DNA of 32,000 nucleotides from Wallemia ichthyophaga EXF-994 (GCF_000400465.1 NW_008806291.1:1-32000); one strand, 5' to 3'. Shown: positions 1-32,000, numbered from the stretch's first letter. The notes: a model not told the origin generated them from the letters alone. Numbers and translations: made by a program.

Positions 1-1150
1 TGTAATCAATGATGGCAACGGCGAAGGCGGAGGAGACGTAGAAGGTGGAAATGATATATGTGGACGGACTGAAACAGCCAAGAATTACTGGTTGAGATTT
101 TATGTTGAAAGACATAAACAGGTTCTTTCAGCTATCTATCTTTCGCGTATAATCAAATGCACCCCGTCAGTTGCTACAGTGCAAATCTTTTAGGTGTTGG
201 TACACGACACTCCAAGAATTTTCAAAGGACTCATGCCAACACTTATCGAAAGACTTGTCACAATTCTTACCAGTGATCGTTTAAAATGCCCGAAACTGCT
301 GCAAGGGCATTGAGACAAATTGGCAGAAAACAGAGTGAGAAGTCTTGCAAAATGTTACTCAAGTTTTACATTCATTCCTGAATGCAGCTTCCTCTCAACT
401 CAGAGGGTGTGTGTATTGCGTTCGCCGAATTCCTCAAGATTTGTCGAGAGGGAAAAGATTGAAAGTGATCGCAACATCATGAATGTCTCGTTGATGACAA
501 TTACAGAGTTAAAGGAGCAGCTGTTTGGTTAAGGTTGGATAGTTCGAGGCTTAGCTGTTCATAACTGGAGGAATTGTGTGGCATATCGCACAAATTCTCA
601 GCCTGAAGGTGTACCTCGGCTTATATGCAAAGATTTCTTTTACTTCCAATGAGCGTAAAGATGATGGATTGCATCAATACTGCTAGATCCTTGGACGAAG
701 AGAAAGAATTCAGCTTTGCCAGCAGCTATACACTCTTTCATCAAGTCATTCAAGAAATCATGGCTGTTTCTGTTGCATCTGACTACACTGTCAGTCCGAC
801 TGAAGACGTGAGTTCGTTTAGCGCTCTATCTCATGGTGGTTGTTTCTGCATGATGATTTCTTACTTATGTCAACACTGAAAATTCTTACACTGAAAAGTG
901 TTGGTGAAAAACCAAGACGGGTCGCTGACTAGAACACTGCCATGAGATAGCTCGTGTGCTTATGTAACAAGGCTAATACGCTACACAGGTCAAGGACATG
1001 CTCTTTGCGTATGATGTTGCTTATTTCGCTAGTATGCTGACAGACTCAGTTTAAGCATTTTGACTTTGAGTCGCACAAACGCGACTACTCGTTATATGTT
1101 TGATGCATGAATGCTTTACGGGGTACGCTGTACCAATTTAGAAGGGTTTT
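1..1150 (+). pseudogene. GCN1: Degenerate fragment of GCN1 (HEAT-repeat eIF2-alpha kinase activator), C-terminal HEAT region; 5' part lies outside the window
   Basis: Frame 2 reads VERHKQVLSAIYLSR...VQIF*VLVHDTPRIFKGLMPTLIERLVTILTS (TAG at 191-193). It shifts to frame 1 at ~292: ETAARALRQIGRK...HS*...EGVCIAFAEFLK...D*K*...CLVDDNYRVKGAAV. Later come TLKSVGEK and, across intron-like GT-AG units, VKDMLFALSIL. These are colinear with Gcn1 segments recalled from memory (VLAALYIVR, WKALVHNTPR, ETAAR, GVC, LVDDE..VR.AA, IRVVGER, IKAAILFAL). Multiple stops and a frameshift. The 3' boundary is approximate. Confidence 0.75.
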
Positions 1151-1823
1151 TAATAGTGAGGCTTGAGTGGTTATGGTCGTAAGTCTTTATCAGACTAAGG
1201 CGCTTCAATGGAGCGCATGTGTGCCTTTGTATTGCCCCTTTAACGGAGATGGAATGAGACGGTCGTATGCTCAATGACGTGCTCATCATAGCTAGTAACA
1301 GCTGAGATCTGGGTATTCTTAGAGACATTTTGTAGCGAATAGCTGTGTAAGGAGTTTGAAGTGGTGATGATCGTGACTGGTTCTATGTATCACTCTGCGC
1401 TAGTTCAGCCGAAAGTTGTGTGTCACAGGGAAAGATTTGATGTTTAAGAATACACTTTTAAACTACACTGAAATCAAAAATTTTAGGCGCATCCTGAACC
1501 ACCTCTCCGCCTTGATTATTTGATTTTAAATTGCACTCGATGATGCCAAATCCCCAATTTAGAGTTGAGCTATACCCCCTCGCTTTTTCTGCATGTATCC
1601 TTTTTGATAGATGCTTGATAGGGTTATACTGGCCTTAATTTTCCGCTAGGGTCATCATTGAGTTCAATGGACGTCACGCGTCGGAAACTCAATACGCGCC
1701 AATATGAGTTAATGTTCAAGATTTTTGTATGATTACAGCTTCTGTCAGCCTTTGATAATCGATGATATCGTTGAAGTGCGTCATCTCTTTCATATTCCCT
1801 CTATTGCATTTTCCGAAGTGACA

Positions 1824-2033
1824 TCAAATAGGTATATTAGCTGAACAGATGATTGACGGGTGCATTTGAAATGCTTGAAAGCCGATGAATAGAATGTCAT
1901 GGTAAAATCGTGTTTCTTGTATGTGCAAGATTTCGATGTGCATTTCTTTGAGTATTTGGAGTAATTTGAGCATGTATATTTCGACATAATATTCTTTTAC
2001 GTCAGCTGGCTTTTTGTATATTGACTCAGCTAG
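1824..2033 (-). other. Possible relic of an APE-type endonuclease (non-LTR retrotransposon-like)
   Basis: Stop-free minus-strand stretch containing LLQILKEMHIEILHIQETR, which resembles the 'D-I-x-x-(L/I)-Q-E-T' motif of APE endonucleases. No RT motifs were seen nearby. Confidence 0.2.
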
Positions 2034-5000
2034 TCATTAATTGCACTTACTTGATTTTCGAAGTTCAGGTAAAGCTTTGATCAAGTGAGCGGGGCGCAAA
2101 GTGACACCATGGTTTCAAGTCGGTTTCGATCTTTATAAACAGCACTCGAACATTTTGAAACTAAAAATTTGGATTCAATGTCTTGTCGAGCTCGCGGGCG
2201 ATTAGTGGAAGAAATAGAACACCGAGCGAGTAGGCACGATTGATAAAATATTGAAAATACAAGCAGGAAATAGTTGGATTATTTATAGTGTCTTTTGGAC
2301 AGTGATTTAGTAATAATTACAAGTGCGTGCTAGTGTGAGAATGGTGTTATCGGGAAGACAGCAAGACTTCCCATTTCGAAGACCTATTCTGATATATCTA
2401 TCCCCTTCAGAGCATCCCCTCCTACGTTCTTCAGCTAAGCCGAAAATTAGTAGTAGAGGAGAGATGTGAGTAGAGAAAATCTTATATTTTAAAAAAACTC
2501 AGCAGAGCTTATCGTTCCTTGATTTTCCAGCTTCACCAGCTGAATTTGAGATGACGCATTTTCGACGATAGCAGAAATTGCTTAGAGCTGATTTAAGGTT
2601 TTCATGCCATAGCTTTGGATTGTCAATATCATGAATTGTAATTCATCGCTCCTCTTTCCGCATTTGGTAGGTGCAGATCACCTCGACCAGCTCAATTACT
2701 AAAAGATGCGATGATTAGGCTGAGGTATGAATATATTAGTAAACTCTCCTAATTTTCTGGTTCAATTTAATATATTCAGAGATGTAATTTGATGCTATCT
2801 ATTAAATTTTTAAAATGTCATATTGTTTCAGATACTGAGACGAATTTCATCCAGACTACAGACAAAAATGTATATTAAAAATCCATAAATATCCCCCATA
2901 GAGCTCACTGATATGTATCATTGTGTTTCTTTTTCAATATCTCAAATATTTTTCAGCAAGATATGCCACTGTGAGTAGCTATGAATCTCAGACGCAAAAC
3001 AGCTGGAGGATGTAAGTAATAAAATAGTAGCAGATACGTCTGAGTATTTAAGCAGCATATCACTCTGAGAGCTATTTAGGTGAAAGTGTATCCCTCAATC
3101 AACTCACAGCATGTCTTTTACGCATGCTCTGTGATGAAGGCGCTTTCAAAGATTTGCAAGTGCAGAAGCTGGATCTACCAAGAATACACAAATTCAGCAT
3201 CTGTCAGCTGCGATTAATACATATCCCCTGATTGATCTTGTACCAGAACTGACCAGCGGCTAACGCGGCTAACACAATATTAGATTAGAAAAAGTAACTT
3301 AGCTTTTTTCTGATGGCCTCTTTAGCGTCAGTAGTAATCACAGAGGGATGCCGCTTCTCTAACATATCAAATACTTCATCAAACATTACAGCTATGATGT
3401 AGCTTATAAGAGAAGATGTGGTGTCACAATTTCTATAAATTACACTGATAGAATAAATAATATAAAAATACAACAAACATAACATAACATAACAAAACAA
3501 TCTATCTTATGATTTTACAGGTGATATCATTGCATAGCAGGAGCTAGCATTGCTGCGCACGAACTTAGCATATTTAGTTACATGTTTCTTCGCTAATTAT
3601 GAAGAATTGTATCTTTAGTTGAATCAGGGGATCACAACGGATCCAAATTAAGCTAAGATCTACGTATGAAGTGTGCAAATATTTCAGATTATCTGTCAGT
3701 GTTAATTTACTTAGAGCGGGCTCAATGTAATGTACTTGGCAGCCGACAGACGCCTACACTTTCTCGAGCAAGGCAGCTTTAATGCAGAGAAGCTGTTTAT
3801 CGTTTTATCATCTGTGAATAGCGCAACCTGTCACAAGTCACTTCACAACGTTTTCTCATGACCCGAATTTCATCTCTGATTCACGCCACCATAAGCTGTA
3901 TCAAACTATATTGAGATGATAACTCGAAAGGGGTGCTTACTGCTTTTGTGGATGTTCGAGCTTTATTAGACGTCAATCGGTCTCGACCTATGTTATATGG
4001 CAAACCAGCACTCACAAAGGCCACAAGATCCAAAGTCTGGAGCTGATCAATTTGTATAGTAAATATTTTCCTCGGTGATTATCTAGATGTCTCGCACATC
4101 ACCTCTGTAACCTTTAATGTTTGTTGCGTTTTGACAAGCAAGTTAGTCAGCTATAACGTAGCTATGAAGAGACCAGATTTTATTCCACAATCACTAAAGT
4201 CACACTAAATCATTTGTAATGCATTGTCTTTACAATGAGAGTGACTTGAATTGGTGTAATGAAGTGGTGCAGTGAATGGTCTGTGCTTGCTGTTAAACAT
4301 CGCGAAATATTAATAACAGTCCTTTCTTCCAATCATAATCGAATAGACGCGTTCCATGACAGTTTAGAGAACGCGTCAGACGCGCTCTTGAATCGTGGTC
4401 TTTCTTTGACTCATCGTATCTCTTAAATCAATAATACGGTATCGATACCATTATCAGAATGTCGCTCGCTTCTCGAAATGACATAGAAATCTCGCGGTTG
4501 TCGCTGCTGATGAAAGTGATGATCTTTTTGAAAGAAAGATGTTTCCTAAGACAATCAAAACAGCTACGAAAATACAAGCCACAAGTATATTTTCCATATC
4601 ATGTTTTTTATTTTGATACATTCACATTCGCTCAACCTCCTCGTCAAATTTTGTCCTGAGTTTTTCATTCATCTGCTATCTGTGACAGTGAGCATGTTTG
4701 GTAGAAAATTGGATGCATTTTTGCAATATAAAACCGTGAAGTAGTCAATATATCTTTCAGTTAATCCACTGAAGTTGAGATGACGAAATTTTAGTGATAT
4801 CAGAATCGAAACAATTTTGAGCTAAAACGAGGCAGCACCGGTAATCTGGGATGATTAAATAGCACATACAGCGTTCTCTCCGCTCCAATTTTTGTGTTAA
4901 GATCTTAAACGACGAGCTCGATTTCGAAGACATTGATTATTTGGATGAGAGATGAATACACTGGCAGATTTTCTCAGATTTTTATAGAGCGGAACAATTG

Positions 5001-5355
5001 AGATATTTGGTTGTTTGTGGCCTTCATCAGCTATAAAAATTTAATACTATCGATACAGGGCGTGAAATTCTTCATACTTATCCTATAACGTGCTCCAGAG
5101 CTATCTCGGATCGCAACTTACGAAAAGCTTACGATGCGCAATTGGAGTCTCAGGGATACTTGTCAAGTTTTTTGGAGATCATTAAAGTCGTAGAGAAGCC
5201 CATTGAGATGAGTTAGAGGATTGTCCAAGAATCCAACTCGGTGGCTATTGTATGTAATGCCATTATAGGGTTCTTTTTGGAATGCTCAAGATGTCATGAG
5301 GTTGATGCTTTTGCTAATTTCAAATTTTACAACAAATAATAATACATTGAATATT

Positions 5356-7599: not shown

Positions 7600-7964
7600 G
7601 GGGTTGTTGGTGGTCCCAGTTCAAGGAATTATATGAGCGAGCTGAAAGTGGAAATCAATTCAAGCTGTGGATTAGTCGCATTGACAGACTTTGCCATAGA
7701 ATGGGTATTTCGTCATGTTGGTTTGGCTTGATAAGACTTAAATGAAATCAGGGAGAGCAGAAGCTTTTATGGGCTTTGTTCAAAGAGTTCAAAGTGCTTG
7801 CAAAAACGGGTTGTTCAAAAGCAGAGGAATTTCAGTCTTACAAGCAGCGCCCATCTTCTGATACCAGTGTATCGTTCTATCTTGGACTGCCATAGCAAAT
7901 CCTCTTCAAGTCTATCACGCATGTAGCAACTTGACCTTGAAATTTCGATTGGAATCTTGCCACG

Positions 7965-8048: not shown

Positions 8049-9971
8049 ATGGAACTTTATAAAAGGCGCAAAATCAGCAAACTGAGAGTATGCGATGCTT
8101 GCCGTCGACGTAAGCTGAAGTGTATGTGTCTTTTCAGATCTTGGAGCGCCAACTTACTCTACGCAGGCGATATCGAAACCCGATTGGAAAACAACTCCAA
8201 TTCGTGCAGCAGATGCGAGCAGAGCGCGGTGGATTGTCTGTTTGAAGAAGCCCCGGCAAAGGGGAAGAAGTACAAGGAGCTGTATTACGATTTGGCGGAG
8301 AAGCACGCGCATGTTCTCAGTCTCATGCGTAAGCTACATCCTGGGATCGACATTGACGGTCTTCAATCGACTGTAGACACGCTGTCGATTGACGGGGACC
8401 ATTTTGATCAACAAGCCGCGGAGGAGCAGGAGCACGAAGTAAAAGCATCCGAGGATTTTCTGCGATCTGCTCAAACTCACGACCCACGAGTGCTCGGGTC
8501 TGCAAGCGTGTTCAAACTCAGGTCTGTCGAACGAATACGGGCGATGGCGGTGGGAAGCAGCTCAACCAGCTTCGATATACATCAAAGATCGCAATACTGG
8601 TCCCCGGTAGCTTGGAAGATCGACGATCGTGATTTTGATCCACCCCAGGAACTTATAGATTCGTTAGTGGAGATATACTTTGAAAATACGGGTTGCCATA
8701 GACCGCTTTTGCACAAGCGAACATTTAAAGAGGGAAATATACAGGATATAGATCACCAGCGAATACTTTGGCTTGTATGCGCAATAGGCAGCAGATTGTC
8801 GGACGATACTTGCGTTCTCGACAGCTCAGAAGTAAAAGCGGATGGCACGCCTCATTCGTATCACAGTGCAGGCTGGCCGTTCTTCATGAAATACGTCTCT
8901 ATCGCTAAACCCATTGCGGCGCTGTCACCATCTCTAGCTGACTTGCAGCAATCGGCGCTGGCTGCTGTTTTTCTTCATTCCCTTCCCTCCCATTCCAGCT
9001 CGTGGACAATAGCAGCGCAAGGGCTGATAATGGCGAAAGATCTGGGTGCAAATTTCCACAGCACATCTACCGATCCCGTCAAGGACGAGCTGCGGCGTCG
9101 CGCATTTTGGAATCTATATCAAATCGAAAGTGAGATGGCAACCTATTTAGGAAGGGATTCAACGATAGATGAGCGAACGATTGGGATAGATCGGCCACGT
9201 GCGCTTCCAGATGAAAATGAACGTGATTTTTACGCATACAACGCCTTCTTGGATCTTATCATAATTGCTCGTAATGCGCTTGATTGGCTTTACGACGAGG
9301 AGCTGATACGTGAAGCACCAAATGATGCTATCAAGGCTCAACAGATGATAACAAATGTGACCGAGCTGGACAGCCGTTTGGACCAATGGATAATTACGCA
9401 GCCAGACTTTCTGCAATGGAATGAAGGGGAGGGGGATGAACCGAGTCGAGAGTGCACCCAGCGTTGCACCAATATGAGCCTCTTTCTGATGGTGCAGACG
9501 CTTATACATCGACCATTCCTCAACGCCTCAGGTCACTTACGCTCGTTGTCTATATCATCATCAGCCTTGTGCGGCAGCGCTGCGCAAAGTCTGGCACAAG
9601 TCGTCAGTGTTTTTAGGCAAATTGATCCACGCACCGACACAGTTGTCAGTTACGCGTTCATCTCGTGCGTCAGTGCGCTCGTAGTTCAGTGGACTAGCAA
9701 GGCGAAGGGTGCAGTCGTGTCAAATGAGCTCGATAAGGCTGTCGATACTCTCCACTCATATATTCGGTCTAGGGAGTCGAGATACTACGTTGCGGGGAGG
9801 CTATCGGATATTATTGCATGGCTGCGAGACGAGAACACCACGGCTGGCAGTATTGAGGAGTTGTTTAATACAGACATCGAAAGTTTGCTGAACAGCACCA
9901 TCTATAGTGCACACTTTTTCAACTCACTGCCTCCCCTAACTAGCCTGGAGGATAGCAATTTTATTGCTTAG
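8049..9971 (+). CDS. Zn(II)2Cys6 fungal transcription factor with Fungal_trans domain; one 45-nt intron at 8122-8166 (~625 aa)
   Basis: After removing GTATGT..CTTAC..CGCAG the cluster reads CDACRRRKLKC-DIETRLENNSNS-CSRCEQSAVDC. Downstream motifs PPQELIDSLVEIYFEN..PLLHKRTF and RRRAFWNLY. Confidence 0.93.
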   Translation: MELYKRRKISKLRVCDACRRRKLKCMCLFRSWSANLLYAGDIETRLENNSNSCSRCEQSAVDCLFEEAPAKGKKYKELYYDLAEKHAHVLSLMRKLHPGIDIDGLQSTVDTLSIDGDHFDQQAAEEQEHEVKASEDFLRSAQTHDPRVLGSASVFKLRSVERIRAMAVGSSSTSFDIHQRSQYWSPVAWKIDDRDFDPPQELIDSLVEIYFENTGCHRPLLHKRTFKEGNIQDIDHQRILWLVCAIGSRLSDDTCVLDSSEVKADGTPHSYHSAGWPFFMKYVSIAKPIAALSPSLADLQQSALAAVFLHSLPSHSSSWTIAAQGLIMAKDLGANFHSTSTDPVKDELRRRAFWNLYQIESEMATYLGRDSTIDERTIGIDRPRALPDENERDFYAYNAFLDLIIIARNALDWLYDEELIREAPNDAIKAQQMITNVTELDSRLDQWIITQPDFLQWNEGEGDEPSRECTQRCTNMSLFLMVQTLIHRPFLNASGHLRSLSISSSALCGSAAQSLAQVVSVFRQIDPRTDTVVSYAFISCVSALVVQWTSKAKGAVVSNELDKAVDTLHSYIRSRESRYYVAGRLSDIIAWLRDENTTAGSIEELFNTDIESLLNSTIYSAHFFNSLPPLTSLEDSNFIA

Positions 9972-13347: not shown

Positions 13348-14686
13348 CTAAAATAATTTTAAATTTCCAATTGGCTGGGATGCTGGTTGAGATACATCTG
13401 CATCACGACCCATTAGACTAGAGAATAGTTCACTAATCTGTGAATCTGGCCAGGCTTCTTTAGATGGTGGTATGGGTACCATGAAATTTTGCAGTTTGTC
13501 GTGGACATTGTATCTAATTCGGATAAGATGGGGTGTACACTGTTAAACGCATCTCACTTACTTGATCTTTCTCCCTTTCGTTGCCCTCGTATCGATATCC
13601 TTTTTTACTTTATTTTTGTTGGGTTTGAGTGGTTGCTCTGGGTTGGCTTCACCTGTTTTGCTTTCTATTATCTCCTTCAAGAGTGTTTGGTAAAAGTCAC
13701 CATCATCAAACACTTCAGCCTCAAATTGACCAGTTGTGGCGTTGTTTCCCCTTCTAACACCAACTCTACTTCTCAGTTTGGGTAATTCTCGCATAACATC
13801 CTCCACTTGCGACCAAGCATCTTTGCTCACTGCAGAGAAACCTTTAGTTGAAGCGAGAGATACTTTATTGGATGTTGTTTTGAGTGTGTCGATCAGGTGA
13901 GGCTCGTAGCTGTTTGCTAAATTAAAAGAATCTTGTGCAGCTTGTTGGGGATATTCTTTGATAGTAGAATCATTGGAAATAATAGTATCATCCAATCGCA
14001 CTCTTTTACGTGGTGGAATCGACGTATTTGAGTCATATTTGATAAATTTTTCACGTATACTAAACAAACTCTCAGTGAGCTCATTTAGGGAGGACAGAGT
14101 TGATTGAATATCATCTTCATTTCCGGTAACAAAGTCATTATCTTCATCTGCGCAAATGACATTAACTTGATTTACAGCTTTCTGTATACCAATACGCATT
14201 TCGAGTAGCTTATCGTATGCTTGTAATTGAGCAATAACAGCAAGACCACGCTGTTTATCGAGGTTTTGAGAGTATTGGAGGGATTCTTGGAGGGATTCTT
14301 GTGGGTCCTGGTGTTCCTGGGAGTCGTGAGCATCGTGAGCATCGTGAGCATCATGGGCGTTGTTATCCGAGCCAATGTTATCGTCATCTGAGTCTGGATT
14401 ATCATCATCGTCGTCGCTTTCAACGATACCAAAAGGCTGCGATTGCTGTTGCTGTTCATCCTCATCATCCTCATCACCCTCATCGGGTAAAGCACTCTTC
14501 GCAGTCATGAAGCTCTGATCAATGTCATCGTCGTCATCACTATCACTGTGATTACCAAAGATGTGATTTCTAGAAGATTTGTTGCCAGAGTATTTGATAT
14601 CATCTAGCTGTGGGTGGTTTCTAAGTGTAGATCCTTGTAAGCGTGTGCACTCCACTCGAAAACTAAGCAACTAACTTTAATGACAT
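13348..14686 (-). CDS. BFR2: Protein Bfr2 / AATF (90S pre-ribosome factor)
   Basis: LDDIKYSGNKSSR, YDKLLEMRIGIQKAV, FDDGDFYQTLLKEII and DIDTRATKGRKIK|YNVHDKLQNFMVP...ISELFSSLMG..LKLF* (intron 13561-13514). The start is inferred as ATG 14686 plus a 55-nt intron 14675-14621 (MSLK|NHPQ), because the track start at 14670 is TTG. Confidence 0.88.
14319..14354. repeat. 9-bp coding tandem repeat (TCGTGAGCA)n encoding HDA repeats in Bfr2
   Basis: Visible directly; translates as AHDAHDAHDAHD on the minus strand. Ends are approximate. Confidence 0.7.
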
Positions 14687-14709
14687 ATAAATTTATATCT
14701 ATCTCTTTA

Positions 14710-15786
14710 ATGATGACCGACGAGGATCAAGGGATTAAATTTGGCGTTGAAAGTGGGATTGCTGGGGAGACTAAGAATATTATAGAGGACACTTGGAATA
14801 TAATAGACGAAAATTCAGATATTCAAGGGAATCGAGAAAACACTTCAAATTCACCAAAAGAACCAGAAGGATTTGCTTTGATTGAAGATTGGGATGGTTC
14901 TTTGATATTTGGTCATATCGACGAAGACAGACATTTGAATGATCTAATGGTTGATATTGGCGGTGTAAATGAGGTGGTTGATGAGGATGATCGCGATGAC
15001 GACGAGGATGACGACGACGACGACGACGGCGACACCGCCCATACGCCCACTGGATACACCACGGATGAAGACATACCCAGTCTCCCTCAAGGTGTAGCTG
15101 CGATACAAGCAACTCAATTCACTCCAACACCCACACCTACACCTTCTAGCCCGATTAAAGAAGGACGTAAACCACAAATGGGTCATTTCCATAATCCCTT
15201 AATCGGCGATATCCATAGAGTGGCTAGAGAGGGCGTTCCCCTCGCTCGATTTACCAACACACACAACCAAACAAACGGTAATTCAATCATTATCGACCAT
15301 AAGCACAAGCCAGTGCCTTCTCCTTACTCAGATTTCTATTTGGTGGGCAATCAACGACGGTGTACGCGTGAGGACAGTGAAAGTGAATCGCCAGTGAGGA
15401 GTACAATCCCCCAGCAACCACTATCCCTAGATGATGTCATTGACACTTCAACGCTCAGTGATACGCCTTTAGAAATAGCAGATTCATCTGCGCATACTCA
15501 ACACACTCGCTGGGATAGAATTCCTATTGGTGCTTTCTCCATGTCCCAAAGTGATTTCAACGATAAAGGTGTAAATCCAACTCACCCGCACCTTATAGCG
15601 TCTGCGAGGAGCAGCAAATCAAACAGCCCGCACAACCCCCCAAAACATCGCAAATCTCGCCCTAAACAGCCCTCACCACTTGTGTTCCCTAGTGATGGCA
15701 GCGGTCAGGGCCACTACGCAACGCCACAATCAACGCGCAGGAAGGGCAAGAGTAGAGAGGCCACGATTAACCAATTAGACATATAG
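14710..15786 (+). CDS. Acidic/disordered protein, possibly Ifh1/Crf1-like transcription cofactor; start could be 14680, 14710 or 14713
   Basis: Single long ORF with a poly-Asp tract, [23 protein letters not shown] and [18 protein letters not shown] blocks. These are reminiscent of the CRF1/FHB region of Ifh1-family proteins. Family assignment is from memory and unverified. Confidence 0.6.
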
Positions 15787-23571: not shown

Positions 23572-25188
23572 CTACCTCATGGACAGAGTACTCTGAGAGC
23601 GCAGCTTGGTTGGGTTCTTGGGGATGGACGACGAGCTTGACTGTCCTCTGTAGTGTCTGATAGTGGGAGGGGGAGGGGGGCCGACGTTATCTCTCGACGG
23701 ACTCAGCAGGCTGTCTCTGGAGGGTGGTCTGAGGGTATGAGTGGATTGTGAGTGGTGTGAGTGGTTTGCGTAGCTTGCCGGGCTCGTAGCACCCATCCGC
23801 AAGCTATCCCTAGAAGGAGTCTTGCGTGGCCTGTCGCTGTATCTCATCTGCGCCCTAGCGTGTGCCTGCTGTATCTGCAGATGATTCGCAGTAGCTGATT
23901 TGCGACTGTCCGCACTGGACGGGGACGGCGACACACCCCCGTAATCCGATTTGGCCTTGTTCTTGCCGTGGCTAGGAGCGCTCTTCATGCTCTTCATACC
24001 TCCGCCAATATCACCCCCACCACCGCTCAGATAGTAGTCCTCGTCATGCACACTGTACCCACCAGCTTCAGACCCACCCGCCTGGGAATGCTCCTCGTCC
24101 CACTGCTGTCCAGCGAGGAATGCGGCGTGTTGGGCGACATAAGCCTGGAAAGACTGGCGCGCATTCATCATGGCTTGAAAGTGCATCTGGGCTGCTTGCG
24201 CGGCGTGTTGGTTGAGGTCACCGCTCGTGCTGCTCTGTGCGGAGGGCGGGGGCGTGGGGATTGCCATGTTCATGTTGGGCGGTGGGATCGGTGCTTGTCC
24301 TGTCTGGCCCATCGGCGGAAAGGGGAAGGACGCGGGGGGTATCTGAGACATTTGCATGGGTGATGCACTTGGCATAAACGGATTGAATAGCGATCCACCT
24401 GGTGCGCTGTGCATTGACACAGAGGGTGAAGGCGGTGGTGGTGGCCGTAGACCGTTTGATGGCGTCTGCCGCGATTGGGGAGAGTAGCTCGCATGTGACT
24501 GTCGTTGGTAGTTGGGCGAGAGGGAGGCGGGTGAAAGGGTGCTAGAGAGTGTGGAAGTGTGTTTACGGCTCGGCGGCGGCGGCTTGCGGTAGCTGAGCTG
24601 GTGTGAGCTGCCCTGGAGCTTGAGTGAGGGTGTTGATTTGTTCGGCTTGCTCGCTATCGACGTCGCTAAACTGACCTGCGACTTGGAACGCAGCTGCGAT
24701 AGCGGCAGCGTGTCGTCGCTGTCGTCGCTCGTATCGTCAGGAATCGTTGTAGCGGCGTGGCGGATAGTGGAACGCGACTGTCTGATGCGGTCGCGGAAGT
24801 TTGTCATGTCGCCACGGTCATCGTCGTCATCGTCTTCATCGGATGTGTGCCAGGCTGAGAGGTTTTGCTGCTTCGGCGGTGGTTTCCTGTGCGTTTTGAA
24901 GGCTGGGACTGGGGCTGGTGATTGGCGGCTTGGCTGGAAATGTGACGTTGTTTGCGTCGGCGTCTGCCTGCCTAGCAATTCGCTACTCGAACGGCGCTTG
25001 AAATCCTTGACAGACATTTTGGGCGACGAGGAGGAATCAGTGAGCGTGGGCTGTCCAATGGGGTGCTCTTTGAAGCTCTCGACGCTATTGTTGTTGCTGG
25101 GCTGCGACTGCCTCGGTTTCCTTGCGTCCTTCGCGCTTGCGTCTCTCTTGAACAACTTCCTCAATCCGTCTTTAAGTGCAATCCTCAT
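23572..25188 (-). CDS. Hypothetical Ser/Pro-rich, largely disordered protein (~538 aa)
   Basis: Long uninterrupted ORF with low-complexity composition, DDTLPLSQL and a helical AQMHFQAMMNARQSFQAYVAQHAAFLAGQQWDEE block. Start at ATG 25188 or 25245. Confidence 0.75.
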   Translation of the reverse strand: MRIALKDGLRKLFKRDASAKDARKPRQSQPSNNNSVESFKEHPIGQPTLTDSSSSPKMSVKDFKRRSSSELLGRQTPTQTTSHFQPSRQSPAPVPAFKTHRKPPPKQQNLSAWHTSDEDDDDDDRGDMTNFRDRIRQSRSTIRHAATTIPDDTSDDSDDTLPLSQLRSKSQVSLATSIASKPNKSTPSLKLQGSSHQLSYRKPPPPSRKHTSTLSSTLSPASLSPNYQRQSHASYSPQSRQTPSNGLRPPPPPSPSVSMHSAPGGSLFNPFMPSASPMQMSQIPPASFPFPPMGQTGQAPIPPPNMNMAIPTPPPSAQSSTSGDLNQHAAQAAQMHFQAMMNARQSFQAYVAQHAAFLAGQQWDEEHSQAGGSEAGGYSVHDEDYYLSGGGGDIGGGMKSMKSAPSHGKNKAKSDYGGVSPSPSSADSRKSATANHLQIQQAHARAQMRYSDRPRKTPSRDSLRMGATSPASYANHSHHSQSTHTLRPPSRDSLLSPSRDNVGPPPPPTIRHYRGQSSSSSIPKNPTKLRSQSTLSMR

Positions 25189-25237
25189 GGATGTCGTGCA
25201 TGAAGGGGTCAATATTAAATTTATTATCAATTTACAG

Positions 25238-27453
25238 TTATTCATCTGCCAAATCCTCTCTGAAAACCTTTAATTAGTTTATTTATACGTTTTTTACTTT
25301 TCCACTCACGCAAAATGCAAGTCGCTGTGTTGGCCTTTATCTGTAGACTTGACGGGGATTTTGCATTTCGGACACACATCTGTATCATTCTCCTCTTCGC
25401 TACTTGATATTGTTATAGTTTCTGTCGTCATCTCCTTTCCCTGCTTCTTTGTTGTTGCACTAGCACTAGCATTGGCACTGGCACTGGCGCTCGCAAGAAA
25501 CGCAGTCAGTCCCGTCTTCGGTTGGTCTTTCTTCTTCTTCTTCTGCGACGGCGCTGCTGCCGTGCTATCTGTCCGCTGCCGCTTTGCTTCTTTGTGTTTC
25601 ACCACCTTGTCTCGCCTTTCACCGCTTTCACCGCTATTGCCACTATTGCCGCTATTGCTTCCTAGAAACCCCGCAATGCCTCTCTGTCCCTGTGATATGT
25701 AGTGGCTTAATTAGCATACCACGTTACCTAACATCCACACTAGACTCACAGCTTCCACCGCCGCCAAACCAGAAAATGACAGCGCCAACTTATTCACCTC
25801 ATACCCCAACCTATGTTCATTGGGAATATCTTTCATCTCACTCGCTACAAACTCCCTCAGAAGCTTCTCTGCGTGTTTCTGAATCAACTCTGGTCCAAAT
25901 GCCGCGTTGTATGGGAAAGGTGATTGGTGAGAGCGGGATGGTTGGTAGAGTTGGTTAATAGAGAGAACAATACTCTTGGGCCACATTGTCCGTTTATCTT
26001 GTTCGCCTCTCATTTCTTTCAACCTCTGAGACAACTCGCTTGAGAGGATTTTAAACCAATGGCGGATCTCTCCGACAGTTTTGACGGTTGGGCGGAATGA
26101 CTTGGATGCGAGCATAGATTTGGTCATGACGCGTTGCGTAACCTGATCTGAATTAACACCGCGAATAGTGTTGTAAATCCAAATACTCTCTTCGCCGAAA
26201 TGTCGCTGCATCTCACTGAGTGGCACAGTAAGAAGGTCTGATACACTAGCTGCATCGTAATGTGCAGCAAGAGTTTCACCGAATTTACCACCGAGGCTGC
26301 GTATTTTCTGGAAACGCATCGGCGCAAGGAAGTTGTTCACGGCGGTTTGACGTAGGATGGTCTGTGCGTCTGGTTTCTTCCATGCTGAACATATCTTGGC
26401 TAGTATTTTGTTGTGCGAGATTCCAGCTGAACATGTGTAGCTCAGCTGCTCGTACATCGCTCGTCGCATCCCGGATACTGCCTCGGCACCGATCTGGAGT
26501 GCGACATCTGACCAGGATGGCTGTGTGTCTGTGTCGGTGTAACAGTGCTCTCGCTTGTCATCGTCCTCCTCCTCCCGCGTACTCACCAAATTACCCAAGC
26601 CAGCGAATGATATGATGGGAGGGTATGGTAGTGCGTCGTCGAGTGTCTTGTCTGGTGGGAGGTGAGCTATGAAGGGATATCTGGATGTAAATTGCGTTAG
26701 AGCGGGTGATTTGATGCTAGAAACACCAACCCACCTCTCTATAATCTTCCCTCGCACCATCTCAGTGAGATCAATGTACTGCTCGTCTATAGATGCCTTC
26801 TCAATCTCCGAGTTTGGGAAGTAGTCATGCATAAATTTGAGCACCTTGGAACCCTCTCTGCGGTAAGGATCGAGTGATACCTGTGTATGTTTGTGAGAAA
26901 AATCAAGTGAGACATAGAGTGAAGATTTTCACTAACTTTATGAGTAGCTTGAGTAGGGGGATCGTCCCAATAACCGGGTTCTTCAACGCCTTCTTTATAG
27001 GTGGCTACATGTACAGGGATTAGATTTGGACATTTCTTCTTGGCCTAGAAAAGTTAGATGACGTCATGTTGTAGATTGAGAGGTACCTCGAAAATATTCT
27101 CATGGCGGGATACACCGGCATTTCTGGCAGGATATGAGATGGCAATGAGGCCATTCCACTGTTGCACCACGATAGGAGCGTCGATAGGGAGGTTTAAGCG
27201 TTTCCGTTCGAACTGAGAGAGGGTGAGGAAGTGAGAGTGAGAGGAAGGAGGAAAGAAACCTGTGCGTAGGCTGAGGAGATTGAGTGAGCAATAGCACTCT
27301 CCTCCAAACAACCCACTCACCTGCATCTAAATCAGCATGGCAAATAACTCGCAGTGGATTTCTGGAAGCTTTGTGTTAAATGGATCCATAAGAAAGGAAA
27401 GAATAACACCTCGCGTCACTTGGGCAATTAGTGAGAATATTTCGATATGACAT
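25238..27453 (-). CDS. RAD30: Y-family DNA polymerase eta (Rad30), multi-exon, C-terminal UBZ finger
   Basis: Spliced N-terminus MSYRNILTNCPSDAR|NPLRVICHADLDA|AYAQ|FE, then IAISYPAR..GV.R, THK|VSLDPYRRE, EKASIDE (catalytic DE), CSAGISHNKILAK and KSMLASKSF. C-terminus CPKC..HSDLHFA|EDLADE* (last intron 25309-25260). Confidence 0.93.
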
Positions 27454-27506
27454 TGATTGCTGTTGAGATACGCGTCTCTTTATTCAAAACGAGAATGGCG
27501 ACGCGT
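27411..27506. promoter_or_regulatory. Cluster of MluI cell-cycle boxes (MCB) around the RAD30/POL1 bidirectional promoter
   Basis: ACGCGT at 27470-27475 (intergenic) and 27501-27506 (POL1 exon 1); TCGCGT (ACGCGA on the minus strand) at 27411-27416. Confidence 0.6.
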
Positions 27507-30500
27507 GATAAATTGAGGGAATTAAGGGAAGCTAGGGAAGGCGGTGGAAGGGCGAAGCAGTTTAAGGTGGATTATGGATTATTTCCGCCTATGTTTAAAC
27601 TTACAATCCCCAGATATCAGATAACGTAGACATTTACGATCAAGTTGACGAGGACGGATATAAATCAGTTTACAATGAAAGAATTAATAAACCAGATTTC
27701 ATTCAAGATGATGATGGCTTGGGTTATTTGGATAATGGTTTAGACGATTATGATTGGTCAACTCAGAACCCAGCCAGCGGCGACGACGACGACGTTAAAC
27801 CAAAGAGAAAGCCCCAGAATAAAAAGGTTAAACAGAAAGAAAGCCTCGGTGCCTTCTTTGCGCGATCTCAAACCACCAATCCTTCCCCTCAAATGTCTTC
27901 TTATCGTAAACAAGTCCCAGAAACTCAAGCTGATGATTTCATGTCCAACTTGTTATCTGGGTTAGATGATTCATCCACCTCAAACACTCTAAACCACCCC
28001 CCACGTCGTCAAGCTATCCCCAAATCTAACTTGTTCGCTAAACACAGATCTCATGATGAGAATCCAGGTTACAGCTCTCAATCAAACAACCCAGTCTCCT
28101 CTTCAGACCCTCCTTACTCTTCTGATCTCGATTTAGCCCCTCCTTCCTCCAATTCCACCCACTTACGCAGAAAATTTGATGAAAACGCTTCCATTTCATC
28201 TTCCCCTACTAAAAAACTACGTAATCATCCCCCTTCCAGTTCTGACAATGACTTTGACCCCTTTGAAGATAACTCGAGCGTGAAAAATGAGGTGAAAATT
28301 GAACCAGATGGTATAAACTCTTTGAATAGCGTTGATGACACTAAAAAACCCTCTATCGACATTCCCAACAACACCGCCCCCAAAGCCTGGCTCTCTGTTC
28401 TTGATAATATCGCTCCCTCTCCTCCACCCTCCCCAAAACCAGATGATCATGTCGACTTTAAAAGGGAAGGTTCCGCTACTGACAGCCCTCTCTACGACGA
28501 TGAAGGCTGTGTGCGCTTTTACTGGCTTGATTACATTGAAGACTTTGGTCGCGTCATTCTCTTCGGTAAGGCCTTTGACCCTGACGCAAACAAATGGCAG
28601 TCAACTTCCGTCTCTATAGAGGGCATCCAGCGCAATCTTTTCGTCACTCCACGACCTTTCAAACTCGACGATGACGGTAATCAGACTGATCAACCTGTCG
28701 AGCAAATGGACGTGCACAACGAAATGCAAGACATACGCAAAGCCAGTAAAATTAAATCTTGGGCTGCTAAGTTCGTAAAACGCAGCTACGCTTTCGAAGA
28801 AAAAGACATCCCCCATCAACAGTCTGACTGGCTCAAGGTTATCTATGGCTTCAACGAGCCTCATCTTCCGCTAGGTCTGTCTGGAAAGACATTTTCGCAT
28901 ATATTCGGCACAAACACCTCTCCATTTGAACTCTTTGTCGTTAAGAGACAGATCATGGGTCCATGCTGGCTCAAGTTGGAGGATGCCTACGTCACACAAA
29001 AGGGTACTACATGGTGCAAACACCAGTTCACTGTCACTGATCCAAAAACTGTCCAGCATTTCACTGAATCTGATGCTGAATCTCCCAAAGAACCCCCACC
29101 ACTCACCATAATGAGTTTGGCGACAAGAACTACTGTCAACCACACCGCCAATTGCAGAGAACTCGTCGCTGCTACGGCAAGAGTGTGGTCTGATATCAAT
29201 ATTGAAGATCCTACTCCACCTGAACAGCAGCCATCATCCTCCATCACTCTCGTACGTCCCATTGTCATGTATCCACCAGGTTTCGAGATGAAGGCTCGTC
29301 AGCAGAAACCAAAAATTGAGCCGATGCGTAACGAGAAGGCGGTGTTGAGCAATGTGCTCGCTTCTGTGCAGCGACATGACCCTGATGTCCTCGTCGGACA
29401 TGATTTAATGGAAGATAGTCTTGAGACGCTCTTGAACAGAATGCACGAAATGAAAATACCTAATTGGTCCAAAATGGGTAGAGTCAGGAGAGATAAATGG
29501 CCAAGAGCCAAGTTTGGACGCAACAAACTCATCACGAGTGGAAGATTGATCTGTGATTTGAGTTCAGATGCAGGAAAGGTGGGTTGAGTATGTATAAGTG
29601 GATTTTATCTCATTGCGCACCTATTGCACACTTTATAGGGCATGATCTCTTCGACTACTTGGTCCATGACTGAAATGGTTGGCACTCACCTGGGTACTCA
29701 GCGCGAGGATATCGACCCTGACGACACTTCCGCCTACCTTGATCGCTTCTCTCCTTCACCAGACCGCATGATACATTTCGTCAAACACTGCGAAGTCGAC
29801 GCCGTCTTCAATATGGCTCTCGCTGCTAAGGTCCAGATACTCCCTCTCACCCGCCAGCTCACCAATCTCGCCGGTAATAGCTGGGGCAGGACTCTTACTG
29901 GAGGTAGAGCCGAGCGTAACGAATTCATTCTCCTTCACGAGTTCCACAGACAAAAGACCATTTGTCCAGACAAACTCAGCAAGTTCGATAAGAAAGCTGC
30001 GCAGTTGGAAGCCGCTGCTGAGAATGGCGAAGACGAAGCACCTTCTAAAAAGAAAGGAGGTCGCAAGGATAAATTCAAGGGTGGTCTTGTTTTCGAACCT
30101 AAAAAGGGGCTGTGGGATAAGTATATCCTCGTGATGGATTTCAACTCGCTTTATCCATCTATTATACAGGAATACAACATCGACTTCACCACAGTGGAGC
30201 GCCCGGAAGATGATGGAGAAGACGAGGAGAAGATTCCAGAGGTTCCTCCACCGGGATCTGGTCAGGGTGTATTGCCGAAACTGATTGCAACGCTTGTCAA
30301 CCGTCGTAAACAAGTGAAGGGGTTGATGAAGGATAAGAATGCGACGACAGCCAAGTTGATGCAACTTGATATACGTCAGATGGCCCTCAAGCTCACGGCT
30401 AATTCTATGTATGGTTGTTTAGGTTTTGAAGGGTCCCGGTTCTATGCACGCCCTCTCGCCGCGCTGACAACTTTCAAGGGTCGTGAGATCCTCACACACA

Positions 30501-32000
30501 CGCGCGAGCTGGCTGAATCGATGCAGCTGGATGTGGGTATTGATTTTGGTTGGTGGATGTTGCTCACGATCTGCTAGGTCGTCTATGGTGACACGGACTC
30601 CGTCTTTATCAATTCGAACGCATACACGTACGATGATGCGCTCAAGGTGGCGAGCGAGTTCAAGAAGTACGTTAATGAGCGGTACAAGTTGCTCGAGATA
30701 GATCTCGATGGTGTTTTTAAACGGTTGTTGCTTCTGCAGAAGAAGAAGTACGCGGCAATCAAGATGGCAGATGGCGTCGAAACAACTGAGGTGAAGGGCT
30801 TGGATATGAAGCGTAGGGAGTACTCGCAGCTTTCAAAAAACACTTCGCAGTACGTCCTCGACCAGATACTCAGTGGGGAGTCTACGGAGGTTGTAGTGGA
30901 GCAAATACACGAGTACTTGGGTGTGGTGAGCGAGAGCATCCGTAGCGGCAAGGTGCCACTGGAGGAGTATATCATCAACAAGCGCTTAGGTAAGGACCCA
31001 GAGGCTTACCCCGACTCTAAGTCTCAGCCACATGTCCTCCTCGCTCTCCGCATCAAGAAACGCGGTGGTGCCGTGCGCAGTGGTGACGTCGTCAGCTACA
31101 TCTTCTGTCAGTCTCCAGATGGCTCCTCCAGCAAGACGGGCAAGGCGGAGAATGCTCACAGTATAGATGAAATCAGACGCGATGGAATGTCAGTGGATTA
31201 TGAATACTACCTCACTTCTCAAGTCCTACCACCTATCGAGCGTCTGTGCGATAATATCGAGGGCACAGACCGTGCGCGACTAGCGGAGTGTTTGGGTGGG
31301 TGGTGCGCATTATTTTATGGTCTATTAACAAACCAAACCTTATAGGACTCGACCCTGCTCGTTTCCAGACGCAAACGATGGGTGCAAGCAACGACAAGGA
31401 ATTCCACACCCTCGAATCGCAGATGTCCGATAAGGAGAGGTTCAGACATGCTGAGCGACTCGTGCTACGCTGCGTGGGTTGTGACGAGCAGAATGAGTTC
31501 GGCAGTCTCCTTGATGATGTGGGTTGAGTGTGTTGTTGTCTATACTAGCTTACATGACCTGCGCAGACTAAACACATGCAGACGCGCGGTATCGTCTGTC
31601 AAAATTGCAAGGGTGTGCTGCCTCTTGGAAGCGTCGCCACTCAGCTCGAGATAAAGCTTAGGCAGTGCATTGCGCGCTATTACGAAGCTACCCTGGTTTG
31701 TAATGATCAGGCTTGTGGTAATACCACTCGCATGATGGGCGTTTATGGTAAGCGGTGCCTTGCGCCTAATTGCCTCGGAAGTATGTCGTATGCGTATGAC
31801 GACCAGATGCTTTACAATCAACTTTTATACTTTGCGAGATTGTTCGACGCGGATAGGATCATGACGCAGGCTAAGACGGGTGGTAATTATGGTGCGTTTT
31901 CTAGATAGTGCAGTTAGCACATACACACACAATCACACTAACCCTTGTACAGATGAAATTCACCTCCTCTGCGAAAAAAATAAACCCACCTTCTTTACCC
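27495..32000 (+). CDS. POL1: DNA polymerase alpha catalytic subunit (B family), multi-exon, 3' end outside the window
   Basis: N-terminal DFIQDDDGLGYLDNG, FYWLDY..GRVILFGK, RQIMGPCWL, DPDVLVGH, LTRQLTNLAGNSW..TL.GGRAERNEFILLHEF, MDFNSLYPSII, KLTANSMYGCLG and YGDTDS, plus C-terminal Cys4 zinc motifs. The last visible exon continues to 32000. Confidence 0.98.

Follow-up and report, generated by a model that had tools for sequence, protein, structure and literature searches.

Conserved ACGCGT boxes at the head-to-head starts of POL1 and RAD30 in Wallemia: a putative cell-cycle promoter of POL1 that is also the 5' flank of RAD30

In Wallemia ichthyophaga EXF-994, the genes for DNA polymerase alpha's catalytic subunit (POL1) and for DNA polymerase eta (Pol eta; RAD30) start back to back with exactly 41 bp between their ATGs. 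[quoted passage not shown] The locus was analysed within a stretch of 32,000 nt (NW_008806291.1:1-32000; hereafter the window). A first-pass annotation had read it as a single very small promoter, its elements partly inside coding exons, that may tie both genes to the G1/S programme through the MCB-binding factor MBF, and had named synteny and box conservation in related genomes as checks; its positions for both ATGs, the 41-bp gap, the two ACGCGT and an ACGCGA variant in RAD30 exon 1 all hold in the sequence. Our comparison indicates that the two ACGCGT boxes, the exonic one included, are conserved elements that would belong to POL1 from old, and that RAD30 came to lie beside them in the Wallemia group, where its co-regulation is plausible.

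Conservation of the pair and its boxes in the Wallemia group

Head-to-head linkage of POL1 and RAD30 was found in the window, in L001, in Wallemia mellicola (L011-14, L098) and in L002-7, and the gene pair is thus conserved in four lineages. L098 was considered as a fifth lineage and rejected, as it is 92.6% identical to W. mellicola and hence not independent. Two lineages repeat the layout of the window, with CAT, a box, ATG and a box in codons 3-4, namely L001, whose POL1 is 78% identical to that of the window and whose gap is 42 bp, and W. mellicola, with 71% identity and a gap of 39 bp. The AT-rich L002 (59% identity, gap of 113 bp) carries two tandem boxes upstream and spells the Thr-Arg pair of POL1 as ACA AGA.

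The spacer box, MCB1, occupies the equivalent place in L001 (9785) and in W. mellicola, and L002 has it as a tandem duplicate. Between species, the spacer outside MCB1 is 38-55% identical, compared with 41-45% for shuffled sequence, and MCB1 appears as an island of conservation inside DNA at shuffled-level identity. The exonic box, MCB2, has the same spelling, ACG CGT, in L001 and W. mellicola; L002 is without it and has the extra box upstream. On this comparison, box number seems to be kept in L002 while box position turns over. The two boxes at its POL1 start are the sole ACGCGT in 22 kb of L002 (P about 9e-5).

Because MCB2 is coding sequence, its retention was set against codon usage, which predicts ACGCGT for only about 4% of Thr-Arg pairs. 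In POL1 exon 1, 6-9 of the 16 codons capable of synonymous change differ between species, and ACG CGT is retained in three. The proposal of a cis-element within a coding exon is supported by this retention amid synonymous turnover nearby, and both perfect boxes proved to be real, conserved elements. The ACGCGA in RAD30 exon 1 did not survive the same check: L001 and W. mellicola have GATGCC and GATGCA there, and we rejected it as a third element; it is probably a chance match.

The pair also persists through rearrangement. Between L002 (7572-18549) and W. mellicola L011 (3115-17999), it is inverted as a unit relative to a polysaccharide-deacetylase/P450 block, and the other genes flanking it differ between lineages. 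Rfam and tRNA scans of the window returned no RNA gene, so an RNA gene cannot account for the conservation.

The boxes at fungal POL1 and RAD30 genes

A scan of metagenome contigs by POL1 alignment yielded 80 further fungal POL1 loci, partly related to one another. Motifs were counted in 51 non-redundant POL1 loci, with the start codon modelled in 45 of them, and expected counts were derived from the rest of each locus. The 400 bp before POL1 exon 2 hold 65 ACGCGT where 3.0 are expected (51 loci). The excess lies on both sides of the start codon: the 150 bp upstream hold 38 sites where 0.95 are expected, and the interval from the ATG to exon 2 holds 27 where 0.91 are expected. These counts amount to an enrichment of about 20-40-fold. 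A box lies within 300 bp upstream of the ATG in 26 of the 45 loci and between ATG and exon 2 likewise in 26, with 15 loci having both. The downstream boxes span six of 12 N-terminal peptide clusters and fall at sites that vary within exon 1 or intron 1. In the metagenome loci (L019-L090), TCGCGA often adjoins such an exon 1 or intron 1 ACGCGT.

None of this requires a RAD30 neighbour. No RAD30-like gene was found in the POL1 flanks of the 80 metagenome loci or of L008-10, and exon 1 or intron 1 of POL1 commonly holds MCBs there all the same, which speaks against the idea that the exonic box is a device for sharing with RAD30. Outside the Wallemia group, adjacency of POL1 and RAD30 was not found in Atractiella, Tremella, Neolentinus, L008-10, L099 or the 80 metagenome POL1 loci; in L099, RAD30 is located after Spt6. 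Within 600 bp upstream of RAD30, no perfect MCB occurs in Atractiella, Tremella or Neolentinus, and the Atractiella gene has one ACGCGA at -74. Since RAD30 in these three basidiomycete genera lies away from POL1 and has no perfect MCB, the boxes are best assigned to POL1. Judged by these loci, the boxes, exon 1 included, appear to be an old property of POL1, and the juxtaposition with RAD30 a novelty of the Wallemia group. We know of no description of an MCB downstream of the POL1 ATG. The sites in POL1 exon 1 and intron 1 are frequent across fungi and are missed by motif scans restricted to promoters.

Gene models, start codons and transcript starts

Both gene identities proposed in the first-pass annotation are borne out. 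Open reading frames (ORFs) on the + strand match the Pfam families DNA_pol_B_exo1 (PF03104) and DNA_pol_B (PF00136), protein search gave homologues that bear the name DNA polymerase alpha subunit A, and DNA_pol_alpha_N and zf-DNA_Pol domains occur in the orthologue of W. mellicola. On the - strand, ORFs match IMS (PF00817), POLH-Rev1_HhH (PF21704), IMS_C (PF11799) and zf_UBZ (PF18439); the best named matches are basidiomycete DNA polymerase eta, with that of W. mellicola on top at 67% identity. Coordinates are given in Table 1.

Table 1. Features of the POL1-RAD30 locus in window coordinates
Feature	Position	Strand	Description
RAD30 (DNA polymerase eta), whole gene	25238..27453	-	9 exons, 602 aa, UBZ zinc finger near C-terminus
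RAD30 final exon	25238..25259	-	22 nt; stop codon 25240-25238
RAD30 exon 4	27087..27212	-	followed by five further exons to the stop codon
RAD30 micro-exon 3	27260..27270	-	11 nt (CCTACGCACAG), encodes A-Y-A-Q
RAD30 exon 2	27321..27361	-	41 nt, NPLRVICHADLDA
RAD30 exon 1	27410..27453	-	44 nt, MSYRNILTNCPSDA(R)
ACGCGA, one-mismatch MCB variant	27411..27416	-	within RAD30 exon 1; tcgcgt on + strand
RAD30 start codon	27451-27453	-	CAT on + strand
Intergenic spacer	27454..27494		41 bp; entire non-coding 5' region of both RAD30 and POL1
MCB1, perfect palindromic ACGCGT	27470..27475		in spacer; 16 nt from RAD30 ATG, about 19-25 nt from POL1 ATG
POL1 start codon	27495-27497	+	ATG
POL1 exon 1	27495..27566	+	24 codons, MATRDKLRELREAREGGGRAKQFK
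MCB2, perfect ACGCGT	27501..27506		POL1 codons 3-4 (Thr-Arg)
POL1 intron 1	27567..27613	+	47 nt, GT..AG; same position in L001, W. mellicola, L002
Remainder of POL1 (DNA polymerase alpha catalytic subunit)	27614..32000	+	exon 2 onward; continues past window end

The POL1 ATG is homologous to the annotated start of W. mellicola POL1, in agreement with the first-pass model, and the exon 1 peptide is kept across the 45 fungal loci. The spliced start proposed for RAD30 is supported by the agreement of its N-terminus (MSYRNIL..NPLRVICHADLDAAYAQFE) with basidiomycete Pol eta and by the conservation of this N-terminus in four lineages, with MSYR, MSYK or MITYR at the equivalent place aligning to the TYRH motif. 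With the micro-exon included, the N-terminus reads MSYRNILTNCPSDARNPLRVICHADLDAAYAQFERKRL and aligns residue for residue with the basidiomycete sequence TYRHL..NPLRVIAHCDIDAAYAQFE; the micro-exon restores the invariant DAAYAQFE motif. The three small 5' exons, micro-exon included, are also present in L001, W. mellicola and L002, and the RAD30 ATG is preceded, 11 codons upstream, by an in-frame TGA. Taken together, the annotated W. mellicola POL1 start, the aligned RAD30 N-terminus and the upstream TGA make both start codons well supported. A protein search with the spliced RAD30 N-terminus for transcript-derived proteins returned short distant proteins only, with no Wallemia transcripts among them. 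The Pol eta model publicly available for W. mellicola (P0037) is missing exons 1-3 and begins with intron-derived residues, and its correction by three exons, among them one of 11 nt, is a practical side result.

The sequence around the starts also gives a weak hint as to where transcripts begin. In the window, L001 and W. mellicola, codons 2-3 of RAD30 create an ATG on the + strand, 46-49 nt upstream of the POL1 start codon. That of the window (27447-27449) shares the POL1 frame and would lengthen the protein by 16 aa; those of L001 and W. mellicola are out of frame, and each opens an upstream ORF of 19-20 codons that runs over the POL1 start, with its TGA over POL1 codons 4-5. Because this upstream ATG is conserved, a POL1 5' untranslated region (5' UTR) of under about 46 nt, starting in the spacer, would be slightly favoured over a long antisense overlap; the overlap of the two 5' UTRs that the first-pass annotation had suggested is unsupported. 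For RAD30, the stretch free of upstream ATGs measures 141-180 nt in two species and 41 nt in W. mellicola.

Several further observations concern the two genes. The motif CGCGAA, which resembles the Swi4/6 cell-cycle box (SCB) or an E2F site, occurs as Arg-Glu codons in POL1 exon 1 of L001 (9842-9847) and of W. mellicola (L011, codons 11-12); the window has AGG GAA at that site. POL1 exon 1 of L009 contains GCGCGAAA. W. mellicola L011 has an additional ACGCGT in RAD30 intron 1 and another in the homologue of exon 4 of the window (about 7930-7935 and 8212-8217), the latter forming the Thr-Arg codons of GITRHENI; the window has neither. The RAD30 intron at 26681-26734 (- strand, 54 nt) is in frame and free of stops, which accounts for an uninterrupted ORF of 377 aa across it, and its retention would insert 18 aa. 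The RAD30 stop codon overlaps, at 25238-25245, the first ATG of the next ORF on the - strand (23572-25245), which is Ser/Pro-rich, has no Pfam match and probably starts further in.

Elsewhere in the window, a candidate second close divergent ORF pair lies at 13558-14670 (-) and 14680-15786 (+), the start of its - strand gene being uncertain. The ORF-poor, AT-rich stretch 1-5300 (37-42% G+C) holds an MCB/SCB-like cluster at 4295-4390, consisting of CGCGAAA near 4301, ACGCGT at 4347 and 4371 and ACGCGC at 4380; no gene beside the two ACGCGT was identified in the stretch examined.

Predicted control of POL1 and RAD30 and its alternatives

ACGCGT is the core site of MBF and SBF from budding yeast to Magnaporthe, and these factors are general in Dikarya (PMC4862756). 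In Cryptococcus neoformans, the hexamer is enriched at replication-gene promoters, that of POL1 among them (PMC5137879), and the Cdc18 cluster, which groups strongly regulated DNA-replication genes of Schizosaccharomyces pombe, includes pol1 (PMC1157095). In the light of this literature and of the conservation described above, the two ACGCGT of the window are very probably functional MCB elements that would switch POL1 on at G1/S. MBF/SBF is presumed to be present in Wallemia by analogy with its generality in Dikarya (PMC4862756) and with C. neoformans Mbs1 (PMC5137879); a literature search on APSES proteins in Wallemia returned nothing relevant. We infer MBF binding and periodic expression at this locus, and any effect on RAD30.

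The best explanation overall, which we judge about as likely to be right as wrong, is that a G1/S promoter of the MBF type, belonging to POL1, is also the only 5' flank of RAD30 in a compact genome. That of W. ichthyophaga measures 9.6 Mb with 45% G+C (PMC3849046); the window has 47% G+C and short introns. In the ancestral layout, MCB boxes would lie on both sides of the POL1 start codon, upstream of it and within exon 1 or intron 1, as in many fungi. In the Wallemia lineage, RAD30 would then have come to lie head-to-head with POL1, leaving the 39-113 bp POL1 promoter as its only 5' flank. A factor of the Mbp1/Swi6 type would bind the palindromic boxes within one nucleosome-free region, initiation complexes would assemble on either side, and POL1 would be turned on at G1/S and held on under replication stress. 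The RAD30 core promoter would overlap the same 40 bp and would most likely receive the same input.

Co-regulation of RAD30 through the boxes of POL1 is in itself plausible, at an even chance, because the box is palindromic, the core promoter would overlap it and the pair has moved as a unit. A rationale may be seen in the continued expression of MBF targets under replication stress and in the induction of a repair gene by two MCBs: those of S. pombe rhp51 suffice for induction at G1/S and by hydroxyurea (PMC4221157). Also in S. pombe, the promoter between the divergent genes hta1 and htb1 is bound by MBF (Cdc10) (PMC2726434), and the protein level of Pol eta (Eso1) peaks in S phase (PMC4493104). 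On the lagging strand, Pol eta is reported to compete with Pol alpha and Pol delta (PMC6411934).

The element as a whole appears to be an MCB promoter, a known type, that here doubles as a conserved and extremely short divergent intergenic region. The S. cerevisiae POL1 promoter carries MluI boxes, and the MCBs of yeast POL1/pol1 lie roughly 100-200 bp upstream of the ATG. With these promoters, bound by MBF (Mbp1-Swi6 or Res1/2-Cdc10), the Wallemia locus shares the gene, the hexamer and the presence of at least two copies at the 5' end. It differs in that its boxes lie about 25 nt upstream and 6 nt downstream of the ATG, one of them coding, and in that the whole upstream region amounts to 41 bp common to a second gene. 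S. pombe rhp51+ likewise pairs a damage-tolerance or repair gene with two closely spaced MCBs, 9 bp apart (PMC4221157), but there the boxes are placed some 180-190 bp upstream of the start codon and the promoter is the gene's own, whereas RAD30 would borrow the boxes of POL1. The hta1-htb1 pair, bound by MBF/Cdc10 and Yox1 (PMC2726434), is also head-to-head over a short intergenic region with a G1/S site, which in Wallemia is putative; the histone pair, however, is ancient and its products are partners in one complex, whereas POL1-RAD30 is lineage-specific and encodes two proteins that are not known to be subunits of a common enzyme. Finally, the locus resembles the bidirectional pairs of compact genomes, with ATGs less than 1 kb apart and linkage kept while flanks rearrange, and departs from them in its extreme spacing of 39-42 bp and in the putative regulatory element in a first coding exon.

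Three points weigh against the shared G1/S promoter proposed here. Several divergent neighbours of MBF targets in S. pombe are bound and yet not periodic, six non-periodic Cdc10-bound genes being merely such neighbours of true targets (PMC2726434), so co-regulation of RAD30 cannot be assumed. RAD30 lacks a perfect MCB in Atractiella, Tremella and Neolentinus, and MBF control is then not an ancestral need of this gene. Lastly, a box 16-25 nt from each ATG is unusually close for an activator site; transcription would have to start almost on top of the box, or transcripts would begin inside the partner gene.

The first two of these points fit a different account, which we consider possible at somewhat less than an even chance: the boxes serve POL1 only, and RAD30, carried there by rearrangement and genome compaction, is a passive neighbour with a minimal core promoter of its own that is constitutive or responsive to damage. 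The pair would then persist only because the promoters overlap and cannot be pulled apart without harm to one of the two genes. This account also draws on the generality of MCBs at the POL1 start of fungi in which RAD30 is not the neighbour, exon 1 and intron 1 included, and on the lack of conservation of the ACGCGA in RAD30 exon 1. Against it stands the spacing: with 39-42 bp between the ATGs, the RAD30 core promoter must overlap the DNA predicted to be bound by MBF, and a palindromic box has no orientation. The pair has, moreover, been kept through inversion and flank turnover in lineages whose POL1 is only 59% identical.

A factor other than MBF, either another APSES-type protein or a CGCG-binding protein, might instead bind ACGCGT and exert a control other than G1/S. 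The single Mbp1/Swi4-like gene of C. neoformans, MBS1, can be deleted with the cells remaining viable (PMC5137879), so basidiomycete wiring may differ from that of yeasts. The broad conservation of ACGCGT as the core MBF/SBF site (PMC4862756), its specific enrichment at the replication-gene promoters of this same basidiomycete (PMC5137879) and its excess at POL1 across fungi all stand against such a factor, which we regard as improbable.

The window alone offers weak evidence against chance. It contains 10 ACGCGT where 6.0 +/- 2.4 are expected, which is not a clear overall enrichment, and 10 copies were reached in five of 100 shuffles; for two copies within 150 bp of the pre-specified site, the Poisson P is about 1e-3. 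Of the other copies in the window, five are within long ORFs and two form the pair at 4347/4371 in an ORF-poor stretch, so pairing by itself proves little, and one box of the POL1-RAD30 site is coding sequence in any case. It is the comparison with other species, with boxes in every related lineage and enrichment at fungal POL1, that points to more than chance. The notion that two CpG-rich hexamers without function happen to lie near two start codons is in effect refuted by the conservation of the boxes in four lineages amid randomised surroundings, by the absence of any other copy from 22 kb of L002 and by the excess over expectation across fungal POL1 loci.

Returning to the POL1 promoter as the 5' flank of both genes, a bolder version of it may be formulated, although we think it unlikely: the coding or transcribed MBF sites of POL1 would be old and widely conserved in fungi, and the promoter of about 40 bp in Wallemia would fire both ways, tying the dose of Pol eta to that of Pol alpha through the cell cycle and replication stress. 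If true, such a tie would be the transcriptional counterpart of the contest on the lagging strand in which Pol eta is reported to engage with Pol alpha and Pol delta. The ACA AGA of L002 is a natural synonymous change that removes the exonic box. If the promoter is indeed shared, it would rank among the smallest natural two-way cell-cycle promoters: about 40 bp would hold two palindromic boxes, one of which is read as codons. The locus would then also be a clean example from nature of a gene brought under its neighbour's control by genome compaction.

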